A stretch of DNA of 63,840 bases from Octopus bimaculoides (Eukaryota). Positions 10,543 through 62,084 of the stretch are shown here, piece after piece. The position numbers and the translations under genes are program-made. The notes under the pieces are model-generated. The model was not told where the DNA came from. It did not search any database and saw only the letters and a list, made by a program, of their open reading frames with translations. Every line of letters starts with the position of its first letter. Positions within the stretch are counted from its first letter, which is position 1. The stretch spans positions 2,274,623 through 2,338,462 of the forward strand of contig NC_069006.1 of NCBI RefSeq assembly GCF_001194135.2. The letters run 5' to 3'.

Positions 10543-10584
10543 CTATTTGCATGATGAGAATTGTTTTGTTACAATTAATTATAT
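10543..10584 (-). CDS. Gene L exon 12: 42-nt stalk repeat (D)IINCNKTILIMQI
   Basis: Acceptor ctttacttttttag|, donor G|gtaatt, phase 1-1; the other two frames are closed. Confidence 0.72.
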
Positions 10585-11234
10585 CTAAAAAAGTAAAGAA
10601 AAGTTTTAATTGAAAATCATCAAAAATCTCTCTAAAATGCATAAACATTATTATTGATTTGAGAAGACGATTCCAGTTTCATGCAATGTTTAACGTTCTC
10701 AATCATAAATTCCGTCAATTTGGAGGAATGATCGAATTAGCAAGAAAATTGTTGGACACAAGAAATACCTGATGACGATGTGAAATGATGAACAGACAGA
10801 TAACTTCATCGTCGTCCACTTTTCCATGTTTGCATGGGGAGGATGGAAATTCTAGAGGTACATGACTGGATACTCTTCCTGTCACCAACATATACAAATA
10901 TTTATAAAACACCCATCAAGACCCTTCCTCCCATTATAAAACCATGTTTGAGAGGCATCCATAACTAACAAACCATCACAGAATGGGACACAGATAGATT
11001 TCAATCCTTGAAATTAAGTGAGTTCCTTTCCAATCATACCCAGAGAATAATTACAGAGTTTCTATCAAATTAACTCATAAGTCATTGGTTTTGCTTACTG
11101 GTCCAGGACTAGAATAAAAGACACATGCCAAAGGTGTCATGAAGTAGGACTGAACTCAAAACCTTGTGGTTGCAAAATGAAAAAGTTTACAAAGAATAAT
11201 TATGAGACGATATATGAAGAAAATTAATAATTAC

Positions 11235-11276
11235 CTGTTTTATAGATAACAATTGTTTCATTAAAATTTATTTCGT
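11235..11276 (-). CDS. Gene L exon 11: 42-nt stalk repeat (D)EINFNETIVIYKT
   Basis: Same splice sites as exon 10 within a duplicated intron-exon unit; phase 1-1, open. Confidence 0.78.
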
Positions 11277-11689
11277 CTGCAAATTAAAGAAAAAAATTTT
11301 AATTAAAAATTAACAAAATTCTTTCTAAAATGCATGAACATTATTATTGATTTGAGAAAACAATTCCAGTTGCATGAAATGATTAACCTTCTCAATCATA
11401 AATTCCATCAACTTGCAGGAATGATCGAATGAGGGAGAACATTGTTGGATACCAGTGCCTATAGACCGTGTAGGAAGCCAAATGAGAAGCTATCATATAT
11501 TAATACAGGATCCTGTCATTCAGCCATAGATTTCAAGAACCTGGCAAAGGGTTTCAGCAGAAAATGTTCATACTATCTTCAAGGTTCTGCTGCCAGTGGT
11601 TTCAAGGAAAGAATTAGTTACACACCAGACCCTCACCCCATCAAAAAGAAAACACCAGCAGAAAGTGCTGTGGTTCACACCATCCTTCT

Positions 11690-11930
11690 CTTTAAAGCCT
11701 GGTATTTATTTTATTGGTCTCTTTTGCCAAACCGCTAAGTTATGGGGATATAAACACACCAACATCGGTTGTCAAGTGATGGTGGGGGGACAAAAGCAAA
11801 CACACAAACACACACACACATACACACACACACGACAGGCTTTGGTTAGCTCAAGGCTATAGTAGAAGACACTTGCCCAAGGTGTTACGCAGTGAGACTG
11901 AACATGGAACCATATGGTTAGGAAGGAAGC
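11690..11930 (-). mobile_element. SINE family B (in triplicated unit 3)
   Basis: Reverse complement of the family B core and internal (CA)n. Confidence 0.75.
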
Positions 11931-11980
11931 TTAATTATGAGAATAATTATGAGATGATATATGAAGAAAATAATAATTAC

Positions 11981-12022
11981 CTGTTTTATTAACAACAGTT
12001 GTTTCATTGAAATGTATTTCGT
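11981..12022 (-). CDS. Gene L exon 10: 42-nt stalk repeat (D)EIHFNETTVVNKT
   Basis: Acceptor ttctttaatttgcag|, donor G|gtaatt, phase 1-1, open only in the frame continuing exon 9. Confidence 0.78.
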
Positions 12023-12449
12023 CTGCAAATTAAAGAAAAAAACTTAATTAAAAATCAGCAAAAATCTCTCTAAAATGCATGAACATTATTATTGATTTGA
12101 GAAGACGATTCCAGTTTCATGCAATGTTTAACGTTCTCAGTAATTATTTCCATTTATTTGGATGAATGAGTGAATGAGCAAGAAATTTGTTGGACACAAG
12201 AAATGGCTTATGATGATGTGAAATGATGAACAGACAGATAACTTCATCGTCGTCCACTTTTCCATGTTTGCATGGGGAGGATGGAAATTCTAGAGGCACA
12301 TAGCTGGATACTCTTCCTGTCACCAACATGTATATGTGTGTATTTTTGTCTTTCATCTAAAGACAAAGATACAAGCGTCGCTGCTTAGCGTCTGATCGAA
12401 GGATTCTTTACCTAAATTCAGTGGAATACATCCACTGGTTTTCAAAAAC

Positions 12450-59610: not shown

Positions 59611-59816
59611 TGGAACGCTGGACTTTTGAAATTACACGTAACGACATAAATGACGATCCTAAAAGTTCTTTTTATGCTTTCTATGCTGAGTTCATCAGTA
59701 TAACATTTAGCAAAAATTCTAGGACATTAAATACATCATTCTTTCTTCCAACGGAAGAGAACAGAATGCCAGATATACTTTTTAGCACTGAAGGAAAATT
59801 TGGGTTGTATAAAAAG
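59611..59816 (+). CDS. Gene R exon 4 (ERWTFEITRND...GKFGLYKK)
   Basis: Acceptor ctcttatttgtag|, donor AAG|gtgagc, 206 nt (same length as gene L exon 4), phase 1-0, open. Confidence 0.9.
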
Positions 59817-60164
59817 GTGAGCCAAACGTTTATTTTGTTTTCGTTTCGAAAGAAGTTTACCTGCTTCACTCAACTTCAACATTTTACATGTTTCCAGGGC
59901 TTCTACAGTTATCTTTTCTCTTTTACTCGTTTCAATCATTAGACAACGACCATGCTGTGGTATCGCCTTGTAGGATTTTAGTTAAACAGATGATTGACCC
60001 CTGTATTTTTGCTTGGAAGCCTGGTGCTTATTCTATCAGTATCTTTTGGTGAACCACTAATTTCCAGGGAAGTAAAAACACCTACACAGATTGTAAAGTG
60101 GTAGTGGGGGGGGGGCAATCACAAAAACAAAGACAATGACACACACACATAAATACACACCTCT

Positions 60165-60900
60165 CTGTCTGAAACAATAAATAAAAACACCCTACTAGTA
60201 TCCTTCGATGTAGTCAACCTCTACTCTAATATCCCCCACAGCCTAGGAATAGAGGCAATCCAATTCTGGCTAGAGAATTACTCCAATGAACTCCCACACC
60301 ACATCCAAAAATTCGTAATAGAAGGGCTAAAATTCATCTTGGTGAATAATGTTTACGTATTTAATTACAATTTATATCGACAGGCGTTGGGGACTGCGAT
60401 GGGTACGAGAATGGCGCCTTCCTTTGCTAACCTAGTCATGGGGTACCTAGAAATCAATATTTATCGTAAAGTACAAAAAAAACACGGAAACCCATTCTCT
60501 CTGTACATAGAAAATAACTGGAAGCGGTATCTAGATAACTGCTTCGTTCTTTGACATGAAAATATAGAGAGACTTAAAGAATTTCAAGCACTTCTAAATG
60601 GACTTGACATAAACATTCAATTTACGATGGAATATAGCTTTCAGCTATTTCCATTCCTCAACATCCTCTTTAAGAAATCCAACAAGAAAACAGAAACAGA
60701 CATTTACTATAGGCCCACAGACTCCAAGTAATATCTGCTGTTCAATTCATGCCACCCCAGACACACTAGAATGAATATCCCTTTCAACCTGGTAAAAAGG
60801 ATTTGTACTATAGTATCTGATACAAGCACCAGAGACACTCGACTACATGAGCTAAAGAATACACTCTATGATGCTTATTTAAAAAGGAGAGATTATGACT
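60165..60900 (+). mobile_element. Penelope-like retroelement RT fragment
   Basis: LVSFDVVNLYSNIP, GTAMGTRMAPSFANLVMG, WKRYLDNCF, IQFTME, YLLFNSCHP; two stops. Confidence 0.9.
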
Positions 60901-60984
60901 GATAAAATAAGGAAAGCAATATTTACTAAGCAAGTGAGCACTATCATACAAAGGAATAATTAGACGTAAATTATAAAAATGGTT

Positions 60985-61769
60985 ACAATTGGGAACCAAA
61001 TGTGAAAATATTATCAAGGAGATTGCAGAAAACCGCCCGGAGGGCTGTCTTTCTGCTAGCGTAGAGAAATACCACAAGCATATAATGAGAGTTCTTGAAA
61101 CATTGGTGATCTATGAGGAAAGCTGGATCTACTATTATGATCCAGAGGCCAAGAGACAGAGATTCCTGTGGGAGCATCCTATCTTCGCCACACCCAAGAA
61201 GGCCAGGCAAAGAAATTCCATTGGGAAGATCATGATGATCCCCTTTTTACGACAGCAAAGCATCATCTACATCCACGCCGTTCCCTTTGGCCAAACTATC
61301 AACAAAGTTTACTTTGTTGAGATTTTCAGGGAGTTTAGGAAGAGATTTCATTGCAAAAGTTCAAAGCTCTTCCACTCGGGTCAGTGGCACCTGCACCAGG
61401 GTCATGCACCAGTCCACAATTCCATCCAGGTAACCAACTACTTAACAGAAATGGCCACCAAAACCGTCCCTCACCCTCCCTAAAGTCCAGATCTTGCTCT
61501 CTCTGGCTTTTGCTTGTCCCCCAAGCTGAAGGAGAACCTCAGGAGCAGGTTTTTAAACATTGAGAGGATGAAGGAGGCTGTGACAAGGGTCCTGGATACC
61601 TTCACTTTAAAGGACTTCCATGGGGCCTTCATTAAGTAACTGGAACATTGCAGCAAGTGCATTGAAGTCCAAGGATCCTACTTTGAAGGAGATTAGAGTT
61701 TTGTACTTCTTTGACATTAATAAATGTCTCTCCTGAAATAGTCTCGAAGCCACTGCAATGCACCTTGTA
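60985..61769 (+). mobile_element. Mariner (DD34D-type) transposase remnant, 5'-truncated
   Basis: IYEESWIYYYDPEAKRQ…WHLHQGHAPVH…PHPP*SPDLA motifs; in-frame stop at the YSPDL position; TA-ended terminal repeat. Confidence 0.9.
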
Positions 61770-61981
61770 CTTAAACAGCTGAGCTCCTGTAAACATGGTG
61801 CCGTATGACAATCAATATTTGAAAGAATATTTCAGTTGAAGTAGAGATAAAATTGCTGAATGGATGGATAAGTTAGGTGTTTCTAATCTTCATAATTACT
61901 AGATCCAGAACAAAGTGACCCCTGTGTCTAAACCCATGTAATTCTTGGAGACATAATTTTCTCTTTTTCTCTTACTTTTAG

Positions 61982-62084
61982 GTAAAACTACAGAATATGG
62001 AAAATTACGAAATATATTCCTGTATTTTTATTTTTTATCCAAATAATCCTGAATTTCCTCATCACAAATGTTTGTTGACAAATG
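61982..62084 (+). CDS. Gene R exon 5 (VKLQNMENYEIYSCIFIFYPNNPEFPHHKCLLTN); gene continues beyond the window
   Basis: Acceptor ctcttacttttag|, donor G|gtaaat, 103 nt, phase 0-1, open. Confidence 0.88.

Follow-up and report, generated by a model that had tools for sequence, protein, structure and literature searches.

Which kind of protein is encoded by the two paralogous genes on a 63,840-nucleotide stretch of the Octopus bimaculoides genome (assembly GCF_001194135.2, contig NC_069006.1, positions 2,274,623 to 2,338,462 of the forward strand; hereafter the window, with positions counted from its first letter), and what might it do? Based on the DNA alone, an initial annotation had proposed a hidden head-to-head gene pair encoding a signal peptide, tandem PLAT/LH2-like domains and a glycosylated stalk. 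The analysis of gene models, predicted structures and related sequences described here shows that the product of each gene, LOC106880589 on the minus strand and LOC106880587 on the plus strand, is a type I membrane glycoprotein (540 and 583 amino acids, respectively). Taken together, the results make it reasonably probable that these proteins belong to an octopod-specific, fast-evolving family of surface recognition receptors with a PLAT-like ectodomain and, in the long members, tails carrying tyrosine motifs.

The minus and plus exon chains were rebuilt by enumeration of splice sites and phases, independently of the exon list in the initial annotation. On the minus strand, nine signal and module exons splice into 438 codons, and with three additional mini-exons the chain extends to 1441 nt or 480 codons in a single open frame. 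The five plus-strand exons give 229 codons, which is the window's share of that gene. The 12 and five exons, with the codon numbers and phases originally listed, were all reproduced in this way. In the minus chain all acceptors consist of a polypyrimidine tract followed by AG and all donors are of the GT[AG]A type. The signal exon ends in phase 1 and is followed, without deviation, by pairs of [1-0] and [0-1] exons. A tryptophan is found three residues past each phase-1 boundary; in module 1, counted from the predicted AQA/TQA signal cleavage site, it is residue three. The spliced minus product (497 residues) is over its full length 100% identical to XP_014786079.1 (LOC106880589, 540 amino acids, O. 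bimaculoides), and the plus product is identical to residues 1-229 of XP_052832950.1 (LOC106880587, 583 amino acids), in which modules 3 and 4, the stalk, the transmembrane segment and the tail are all present beyond the window. The genes are therefore not hidden: both are annotated in RefSeq, with exactly the exons claimed and rebuilt here, under the title "uncharacterized protein". The complete match to RefSeq and the retention of nine exon lengths and splice sites in Octopus sinensis exclude that the exon chains arose by chance.

In LOC106880589, exon 1 (32265-32319, minus strand, as are all exons of this gene) contains the start codon and the signal peptide MLGLPFWSILVIIFPCLL, matches the RefSeq N-terminus and ends at a phase-1 GTAAGT donor. 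Each module is encoded by two exons, one for its first and one for its second half. For module 1 these are exon 2 (31414-31607, phase 1 to 0), which opens with the predicted cleavage site between F-TQA and TMW, and exon 3 (27434-27524, phase 0 to 1, VSVQNDDLQEMYFGKCGKTFC...). Module 2 is formed by exon 4 (24927-25132) and exon 5 (22773-22872, VKLQNMDNYKIYSC...HRC), module 3 by exon 6 (20743-20990) and exon 7 (19488-19581, IVMTKWLTGEEYGC...YSC), and module 4, which is the most conserved, by exon 8 (17565-17791) and exon 9 (16059-16158). The peptides quoted in the initial annotation map to 20743-20799 and 19540-19581 of the minus strand, ISEVEIDFKGTKKPFKISK being located in exon 6. The exons that hold them are bounded by a polypyrimidine-AG acceptor and by the donors AAA/GTAAGT (phase 0) and A/GTAAGA (phase 1). 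Three stalk mini-exons of 42 nt follow: exon 10 (11981-12022, phase 1-1, DEIHFNETTVVNKT), exon 11 (11235-11276, DEINFNETIVIYKT) and exon 12 (10543-10584, DIINCNKTILIMQI), with which the original list ended. The frame remains open past 10543, and two exons beyond the originally noted span complete the gene. Exon 13 (9535-9586, phase 1 to 2, donor GTAAAA) encodes the transmembrane helix V-IGLLAVTILILLVLLI and exon 14 (4384-4513) a cytoplasmic tail of 42 residues (FKMLGNKKGKSYMPMPQ...DEPGQE) that ends at a TAA stop (4384-4386). It is this pair of exons that identifies the product as a type I membrane glycoprotein.

The plus-strand gene LOC106880587 has the same design. Its exon 1 (50680-50734) encodes the signal peptide MLLLPYWSIFLIISPHFI, has a phase-1 GTAAGT donor and matches the N-terminus of XP_052832950.1. 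The two halves of module 1 are located at 54680-54912 (exon 2) and 56852-56942 (exon 3), and those of module 2 at 59611-59816 (exon 4) and 61982-62084 (exon 5), after which the gene leaves the window on the right.

These chains were recovered by enumeration of phases and splice sites, which succeeded where other searches did not. An all-versus-all BLASTP of six-frame segments of the window was drowned in microsatellite translations. A phmmer search with the two example exons recovered no paralogs in the window, the divergence between modules being too great, and a strict regular expression of the proposed module-end motif found, over the window, the quoted exon only. The window is AT-rich (36% GC), dense in microsatellites and interrupted by 13 runs of N, none of which touches an exon; the closest is 164 bp away. 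Most gaps, for example 5568-5603, 8500-8539, 15250-15305 and 58560-58672, are bordered by microsatellites of the (TA)n, (CA)n or (TATG)n type, and therefore probably represent unassembled intronic simple repeats, not lost unique sequence. Comparison with the gap-free O. sinensis ortholog and with the paralog indicates that the gapped introns conceal no coding exon.

The spliced products and the structural model reveal a cleavable signal peptide, four modules of 95-114 residues, an N-glycosylated stalk built from 14-residue repeats, one transmembrane helix and a tail. The proposed layout of signal peptide, tandem modules and glycosylated stalk is thus fully recovered, and the choice between a secreted and a cell-surface protein, left open at first, is narrowed to the cell surface by the transmembrane helix and cytoplasmic tail. 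The signal cleavage motif is of the AxA type, with (F/V)-(T/A)QA preceding TMW, and the ectodomain contains 16 N-X-S/T sequons. In the full-length AlphaFold2 model an N-terminal helix (residues 3-18) precedes an all-beta ectodomain, a disordered stalk (440-472) and a transmembrane helix (469-503). The cysteine pairs 99/104, 196/211 and 312/325 are invariant across the family and may pin modules 1-3 locally; the pair 30/58 is not invariant.

The stalk of LOC106880589 consists of three 14-residue repeats, each with a predicted N-glycosylation site, and the corresponding phase 1-1 mini-exons share identical GTAATT donors. According to BLASTN, the region 10342-12200 is made up of three tandem copies of a genomic unit of about 700 bp, each with one mini-exon, that of exon 10 being in copy one. 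This repeat was not reported by Tandem Repeats Finder because its period exceeds the limit of the tool. Since the length of the stalk segment varies among the aligned family members, the stalk probably lengthens and shortens through duplication of such units.

Three tyrosine motifs recur in the tails from Argonauta to Octopus: [DE][IV]YxN[LIM], LYTQP and, near the C-terminus, [IV]YE[ED]L. Compared with its paralog, LOC106880589 has a premature stop codon. In the sequence past this stop (4200-4383, minus strand) a relic, ...SSEDGSVSYVVQ*, resembles the tail of the paralog, and a second in-frame relic, NFEQLYTQSI, matches the C-terminal IEQLYTQPIK of long-tailed members, with two more stops intervening. 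The remaining tail of the minus copy retains SYMPM and CYSMQ.

The fold was examined most closely for module 1, which was chosen for modeling on its own since by appearance it is the least PLAT-like. AlphaFold2 modeled the 93-residue query with a predicted local distance difference test score (pLDDT) of 91.9 and a predicted template modeling score (pTM) of 0.81; DSSP divides the model into six strand segments, two of them very long. In a Foldseek search of the PDB the best 33 matches were all PLAT-containing proteins, with probabilities of 0.98-1.00, query-normalized TM scores of 0.45-0.66 and about 10% sequence identity, whereas non-PLAT folds reached a probability of at most 0.35. The matches include lipoprotein lipase (LPL), pancreatic-lipase-related proteins 1 and 2 (PLRP1/2), coral 8R- and 11R-lipoxygenase (LOX), human 5- and 12-LOX, soybean LOX-1 and Rab6IP1. 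The only domain that the lipase, lipoxygenase and Rab6IP1 targets share is PLAT/LH2. For the full-length model the sole compact matches of high probability (0.99-1.0) were again LPL, pancreatic lipase, PLRP1/2, coral 8R-LOX and Rab6IP1, over 120-135 columns and with a root-mean-square deviation (rmsd) of 4.4-5.5 Å. The lipoxygenase alignments of the full-length model differ from those of module 1 alone (15-16% identity over 122-123 columns against 9-10% over 113-117 columns), which suggests that another module probably matches as well. A PLAT/LH2-like beta-sandwich in module 1 is well supported by these models.

For modules 2-4 the same fold is likely in view of the shared exon design, the approximately eight strands predicted for each in the full-length model, and a natural hybrid. 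The latter is an extra, fifth module (residues ~110-208) in LOC115217897 of O. sinensis and LOC106873081 of O. bimaculoides, which joins a first-half exon of module 2 type to a second-half exon of module 1 type. It is evident that modules have exchanged exon halves, and the hybrid speaks for structural interchangeability of the halves. The proposal of PLAT/LH2-like modules is thus borne out for module 1 by AlphaFold2 and Foldseek, while PF01477 is not among the Pfam families listed; the resemblance is one of fold, and homology to PLAT is unproven.

How widely is this protein distributed? When 1.84 billion representative proteins were scanned exhaustively with HMMER, 28 clusters were returned and no similarity to other protein families was detected. 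All clusters for which an organism was looked up or named belong to O. bimaculoides, O. sinensis, O. vulgaris and Argonauta hians, to which one organism-unassigned Logan read set must be added. This agrees with the suggestion that the family is lineage-specific, every looked-up or named cluster bar that read set coming from Octopus or Argonauta. Going by these sequence matches, the family appears to be small and, among the clusters with a named organism, octopod-restricted. That it was undescribed also holds: the members have no Pfam domain on record, source databases name them "uncharacterized" or "hypothetical" and assign them no function, and the literature searched contained nothing relevant on these loci, on PLAT domain proteins of octopus or on the SRA runs. 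One member, UniProt A0A0L8ID31, is labeled "Vitellogenin domain-containing protein", which looks like an artefact of automatic annotation, as the Pfam scan lists no vitellogenin domain in any member. In the Logan sets SRR11869385 and SRR11869391, a genomic contig of about 0.9 kb contains a diverged first-half exon of module 1, in which the acceptor is again in phase 1 and the donor again a phase-0 GTAAGT. It is possible that the family extends to additional species.

In the gap-free assembly of O. sinensis, the ortholog of the minus gene has all nine signal and module exons with equal lengths and splice sites. The ratio of nonsynonymous to synonymous substitution rates (dN/dS) between the two orthologs is 0.56 (bootstrap confidence interval 0.38-0.83), with values of 0.50, 0.21, 0.84 and 0.88 for modules 1 to 4, and identity is higher in exons (88.6%) than in introns (82.6%). 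This pattern of conservation indicates that the gene is real and under selection. Mean pairwise identity within the family climbs inward, from 38% for module 1 through 46% and 49% to 61% for module 4. The two paralogs in the window are 46-62% identical in modules 1-3, 78% in module 4 and 100% in the transmembrane helix, and the dN/dS over exons 1-5 is 0.71 (0.47-1.05). Between the paralogs the exons (77.4% identity) are less similar than the flanking introns (84.5%, p = 6e-5), the reverse of what is found in the orthologs. Some exon flanks are nearly identical in the two genes (32320-32519 versus 50480-50679, and 22873-23072 versus 61782-61981; 96-97.5%), while the exons themselves are 80-83% identical. 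The contrast between exons and flanks would fit gene conversion of non-coding DNA between the two arms of the locus, diversifying selection on exons, or both. The diversity of the family is best explained by local duplication, swapping of exon halves, duplication of modules and truncation of tails.

The arrangement of the pair within the window must be considered separately. Exons 1-5 with their introns and 5' flank lie on an inverted segmental duplication, of which the left arm (22477-37914, minus strand) and the right arm (43206-63528, plus strand) share 72-91% identity. Between them is a center of about 5 kb (38225-43206) with Helitron fragments, fragments of long interspersed nuclear elements (LINEs) and a gap. 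As assembled the genes are indeed head-to-head, as first proposed, but this orientation rests on scaffolding across gaps, and the closest homologs in O. sinensis (CM016884.1, 19.26-19.33 Mb) form a tandem on a single strand with 10.8 kb between them. The true order in O. bimaculoides could therefore also be tandem on one strand, the inverted arrangement being a scaffolding artefact. The arms are parted by three sizeable gaps (35972-36711, 42300-42932 and 44085-44406) and no gap-free contig covers both. Against this, flipping the right block does not give colinearity with O. sinensis, and the arms are symmetric up to the R1 copies (36767-37914, minus strand, and 43206-43979, plus strand). The contig 36712-42299 also contains a junction, of O. 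sinensis 26280 with 1559, that is not present in O. sinensis itself and points to a real rearrangement in the lineage. Moreover, the span of the minus gene (27,936 bp) is equal in the chromosome-scale assembly GCA_001194135.2, which suggests the same orientation there. We regard a scaffolding artefact as possible but doubtful. The difference from O. sinensis is not accounted for by a simple inversion or by a contig flip.

In view of the above, a mode of action for the preferred reading, a surface recognition receptor, can be outlined. The ectodomain would form a glycosylated rod of four PLAT-like sandwiches at the cell surface, and its variable membrane-distal modules could bind a lipid, membrane-surface or protein ligand, by analogy with the PLAT domains of lipases and lipoxygenases. 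The tyrosine motifs of long-tailed members might relay a signal by phosphotyrosine docking or drive endocytosis of the YxxPhi type, and the minus copy, having lost its distal tail through nonsense mutations, would be a short-tailed variant. The evolutionary mode resembles, by analogy, that of multigene immune-type receptor families. A more specific proposal is that octopods have evolved a receptor class of their own, with PLAT/LH2 as the scaffold for recognition, where other animals use immunoglobulin (Ig), leucine-rich repeat, lectin or EGF domains, and that they combine it with phosphotyrosine tails and with a diversification like that of vertebrate immune-type multigene receptors (hypervariable distal domains, shuffled exon halves, pairs of long- and short-tailed genes) for immune, self/non-self or contact-chemosensory recognition; this we put forward only tentatively.

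The same protein and fold might also serve without signaling, as a structural or adhesive glycoprotein, or as a partly shed or secreted protein that binds lipids or lipoproteins for uptake or transport, in which case the tyrosines would act as YxxPhi sorting signals only. Among the structural matches of module 1, LPL and pancreatic lipase come first, and the PLAT domains of lipases dock onto lipoproteins or cofactors. The minus copy manages with a tail of 42 residues, many annotated members have no transmembrane segment, and the [IV]YE[ED]L and YxN[LIM] motifs also satisfy the YxxPhi endocytic consensus. However, three classes of tyrosine motif have been kept between Argonauta and Octopus, with up to several repeats in the tails of Argonauta, which is more than a sorting signal requires. 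The fast, distal-biased divergence is also better suited to variable recognition than to bulk handling of lipid. A non-signaling role thus seems unlikely.

Several observations weigh against the receptor with a PLAT-like ectodomain that we favor. The full-length AlphaFold2 model is of moderate quality (pLDDT 69, pTM 0.61), and for module 1 the Foldseek E-values are 2e-3 to 5e-2 at an rmsd of 4-6 Å. Module 3 alone gave no match to PF01477 (0 families at E<=10), and among the 25 of 34 Pfam families listed for 17 full-length members at E<=1 there was no PLAT. A profile search of the PDB found no match. With hhalign, modules 1-4 aligned to the PLAT domains of rabbit 15-LOX, human 12-LOX and ALOX15B with a probability of at most 0.1% in all cases; as this includes module 1, the test is powerless. 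Comparison of the four module profiles with each other by hhalign gave nothing significant, so that homology between modules is not visible by sequence. As to the remainder of the protein, several annotated family members lack a transmembrane segment, and these may be soluble isoforms or truncated models. The tail motifs comprise few residues and may represent sorting signals or chance occurrences.

Accordingly, one may ask whether the modules are unrelated to PLAT/LH2 and represent an independent or derived beta-sandwich that AlphaFold makes look like PLAT, for instance a strongly diverged domain of C2-like or Ig-like type. The missing sequence signal to PF01477 and to LOX PLAT profiles and the ~10% identity to the structural matches would agree with such an origin, and the phase 1-1 units, the V.L.N....Y.C motif and the receptor-type layout recall genes of the immunoglobulin superfamily (IgSF). 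The PDB sequence search gave nothing informative apart from one weak match to an IgG constant region (E=0.23). On the other hand, all of the 33 top Foldseek matches are PLAT proteins, and they come from four unrelated enzyme and adaptor families. The best Ig-type row, obtained with the full-length model, is LILRB3 with a probability of 0.15 and an rmsd of 22 Å, and module 1 gave no Ig row. Among the Pfam families listed, the 17 members have no Ig, FN3 or C2 match, and the weak matches that were listed are mostly driven by the transmembrane segment. The invariant cysteine pairs are 5-15 residues apart and of a local hairpin type, unlike the B-F pairs of Ig domains, which are ~60 apart. An Ig-like fold, which the motif, the exon phases and the layout had brought to mind, was rejected on the Foldseek matches and the Pfam families listed, and a non-PLAT origin in general appears improbable.

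That one or both copies are decaying pseudogenes still modeled by the predictors is very improbable and was rejected on ortholog conservation: the paralog dN/dS with its upper bound of 1.05, the premature stop in the tail of the minus copy and an exon 2 whose 3' end falls 13 codons short of that of the plus gene could point to decay, but the 540-codon frame is intact over 14 exons with perfect splice sites, the ortholog dN/dS has an upper bound of 0.83 with exons conserved above introns, and the short exon 2 is the norm in the family and no lesion.

Comparison with known systems helps to place these proteins. The known settings of PLAT/LH2 are those of an accessory domain, in lipases, lipoxygenases and polycystins, and of a cytoplasmic repeat, in LOXHD1. 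The lipase and lipoxygenase PLAT domains (PF01477; CATH 2.60.60.20) are sandwiches of similar size and give the only confident structural matches, both to module 1 (query-normalized TM up to 0.64-0.66) and to the full-length model. In lipases the domain acts extracellularly on lipid or protein partners. In these enzymes, however, a single accessory domain is attached to a catalytic domain, whereas the octopus proteins have four tandem modules, a membrane anchor and no catalytic domain, as well as added disulfides, heavy predicted N-glycosylation and no detectable sequence similarity. LOXHD1 of hair-cell stereocilia consists essentially of about 15 PLAT repeats that are recognizable by Pfam, and is cytoplasmic, without signal peptide or transmembrane segment. 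It shares the tandem array with the octopus family, but the latter has four, rarely five, modules that are invisible to Pfam, and these are extracellular and combined with a signal peptide, a transmembrane helix and a tail. In polycystin-1 and the PKD1-like and REJ proteins, which are likewise large surface receptors with PLAT, the only PLAT domain is located on the cytoplasmic side and follows the first of 11 transmembrane helices; in the octopus proteins the PLAT-like modules are extracellular and the single transmembrane helix is at the C-terminal end. PLAT has been termed "an intracellular domain" (PMC4232524). The same paper presents it as a beta-sandwich in which two sheets have four strands each, generally intracellular, and occurring within multidomain proteins, as a single domain or in repeats (PMC4232524).

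Precedents for lineage-restricted PLAT families exist in spider mites and plants. In Tetranychus a locally expanded single-PLAT family is restricted to the lineage, has no similarity outside the clade and is known mainly by its fold (PMC6288829), and plant PLAT1 has a predicted signal peptide (PMC4232524). These proteins have a single domain and fewer than 200 residues, while the octopus proteins of 540 and 583 residues have four modules, a membrane anchor and a tail. In gene structure there is a parallel with the KIR, LILR, NITR and similar multigene receptor families of the IgSF, which also have a phase-1 leader exon, domain units flanked by phase 1, a stalk, a transmembrane exon and a tail exon. 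Local duplication, variable domain number, fast distal-biased divergence, tyrosine tails and the adjacency of long and truncated-tail paralogs are further points of agreement. The octopus family differs in that there is no Ig match among the Pfam families listed or in Foldseek and in that its tyrosine motifs deviate from the strict consensus of immunoreceptor tyrosine-based inhibitory or activation motifs, so that this is a comparison of workings and not of membership.

The combination of a signal peptide, four extracellular PLAT-like modules, a stalk, a transmembrane helix and a tyrosine tail differs from all PLAT systems compared here. No described type I membrane protein with an ectodomain made up entirely of tandem PLAT-like sandwiches was found, in a search that did not extend to architecture databases. 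If the fold prediction is true, the PLAT/LH2 fold was recruited in octopods as a modular extracellular recognition scaffold, and about two dozen cephalopod genes now labeled "uncharacterized" would become accessible to structural interpretation for the first time. Fast divergence with a distal bias, local duplication or inversion, module shuffling, conserved tyrosine motifs and tail truncation are the traits sought in unknown immune or sensory receptors of invertebrates, about which little is known for cephalopods. The locus also illustrates that reading motifs and exon phases in raw DNA can foresee a fold that Pfam misses.

Two minor features of the region between the genes and of the plus gene remain to be mentioned. 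The superseded RefSeq model XP_014786078.1 started at an exon at 42981-43118 (plus strand), which lies 49 bp past the gap 42300-42932, with the conserved signal exon 7.5 kb downstream. It lacked a signal peptide because it used this exon and not that at 50680, with which the current XP_052832950.1 begins in its place. Transposon debris, called by eye from motifs only, is located at 39188-39520 (minus strand), 41566-42300 (plus strand) and 60989-61483 (plus strand), and comprises a PIF1/Helitron-like helicase (GGDFRQMLPV), a LINE reverse transcriptase (YADD) and, in intron 4 of the plus gene, a mariner-like transposase.

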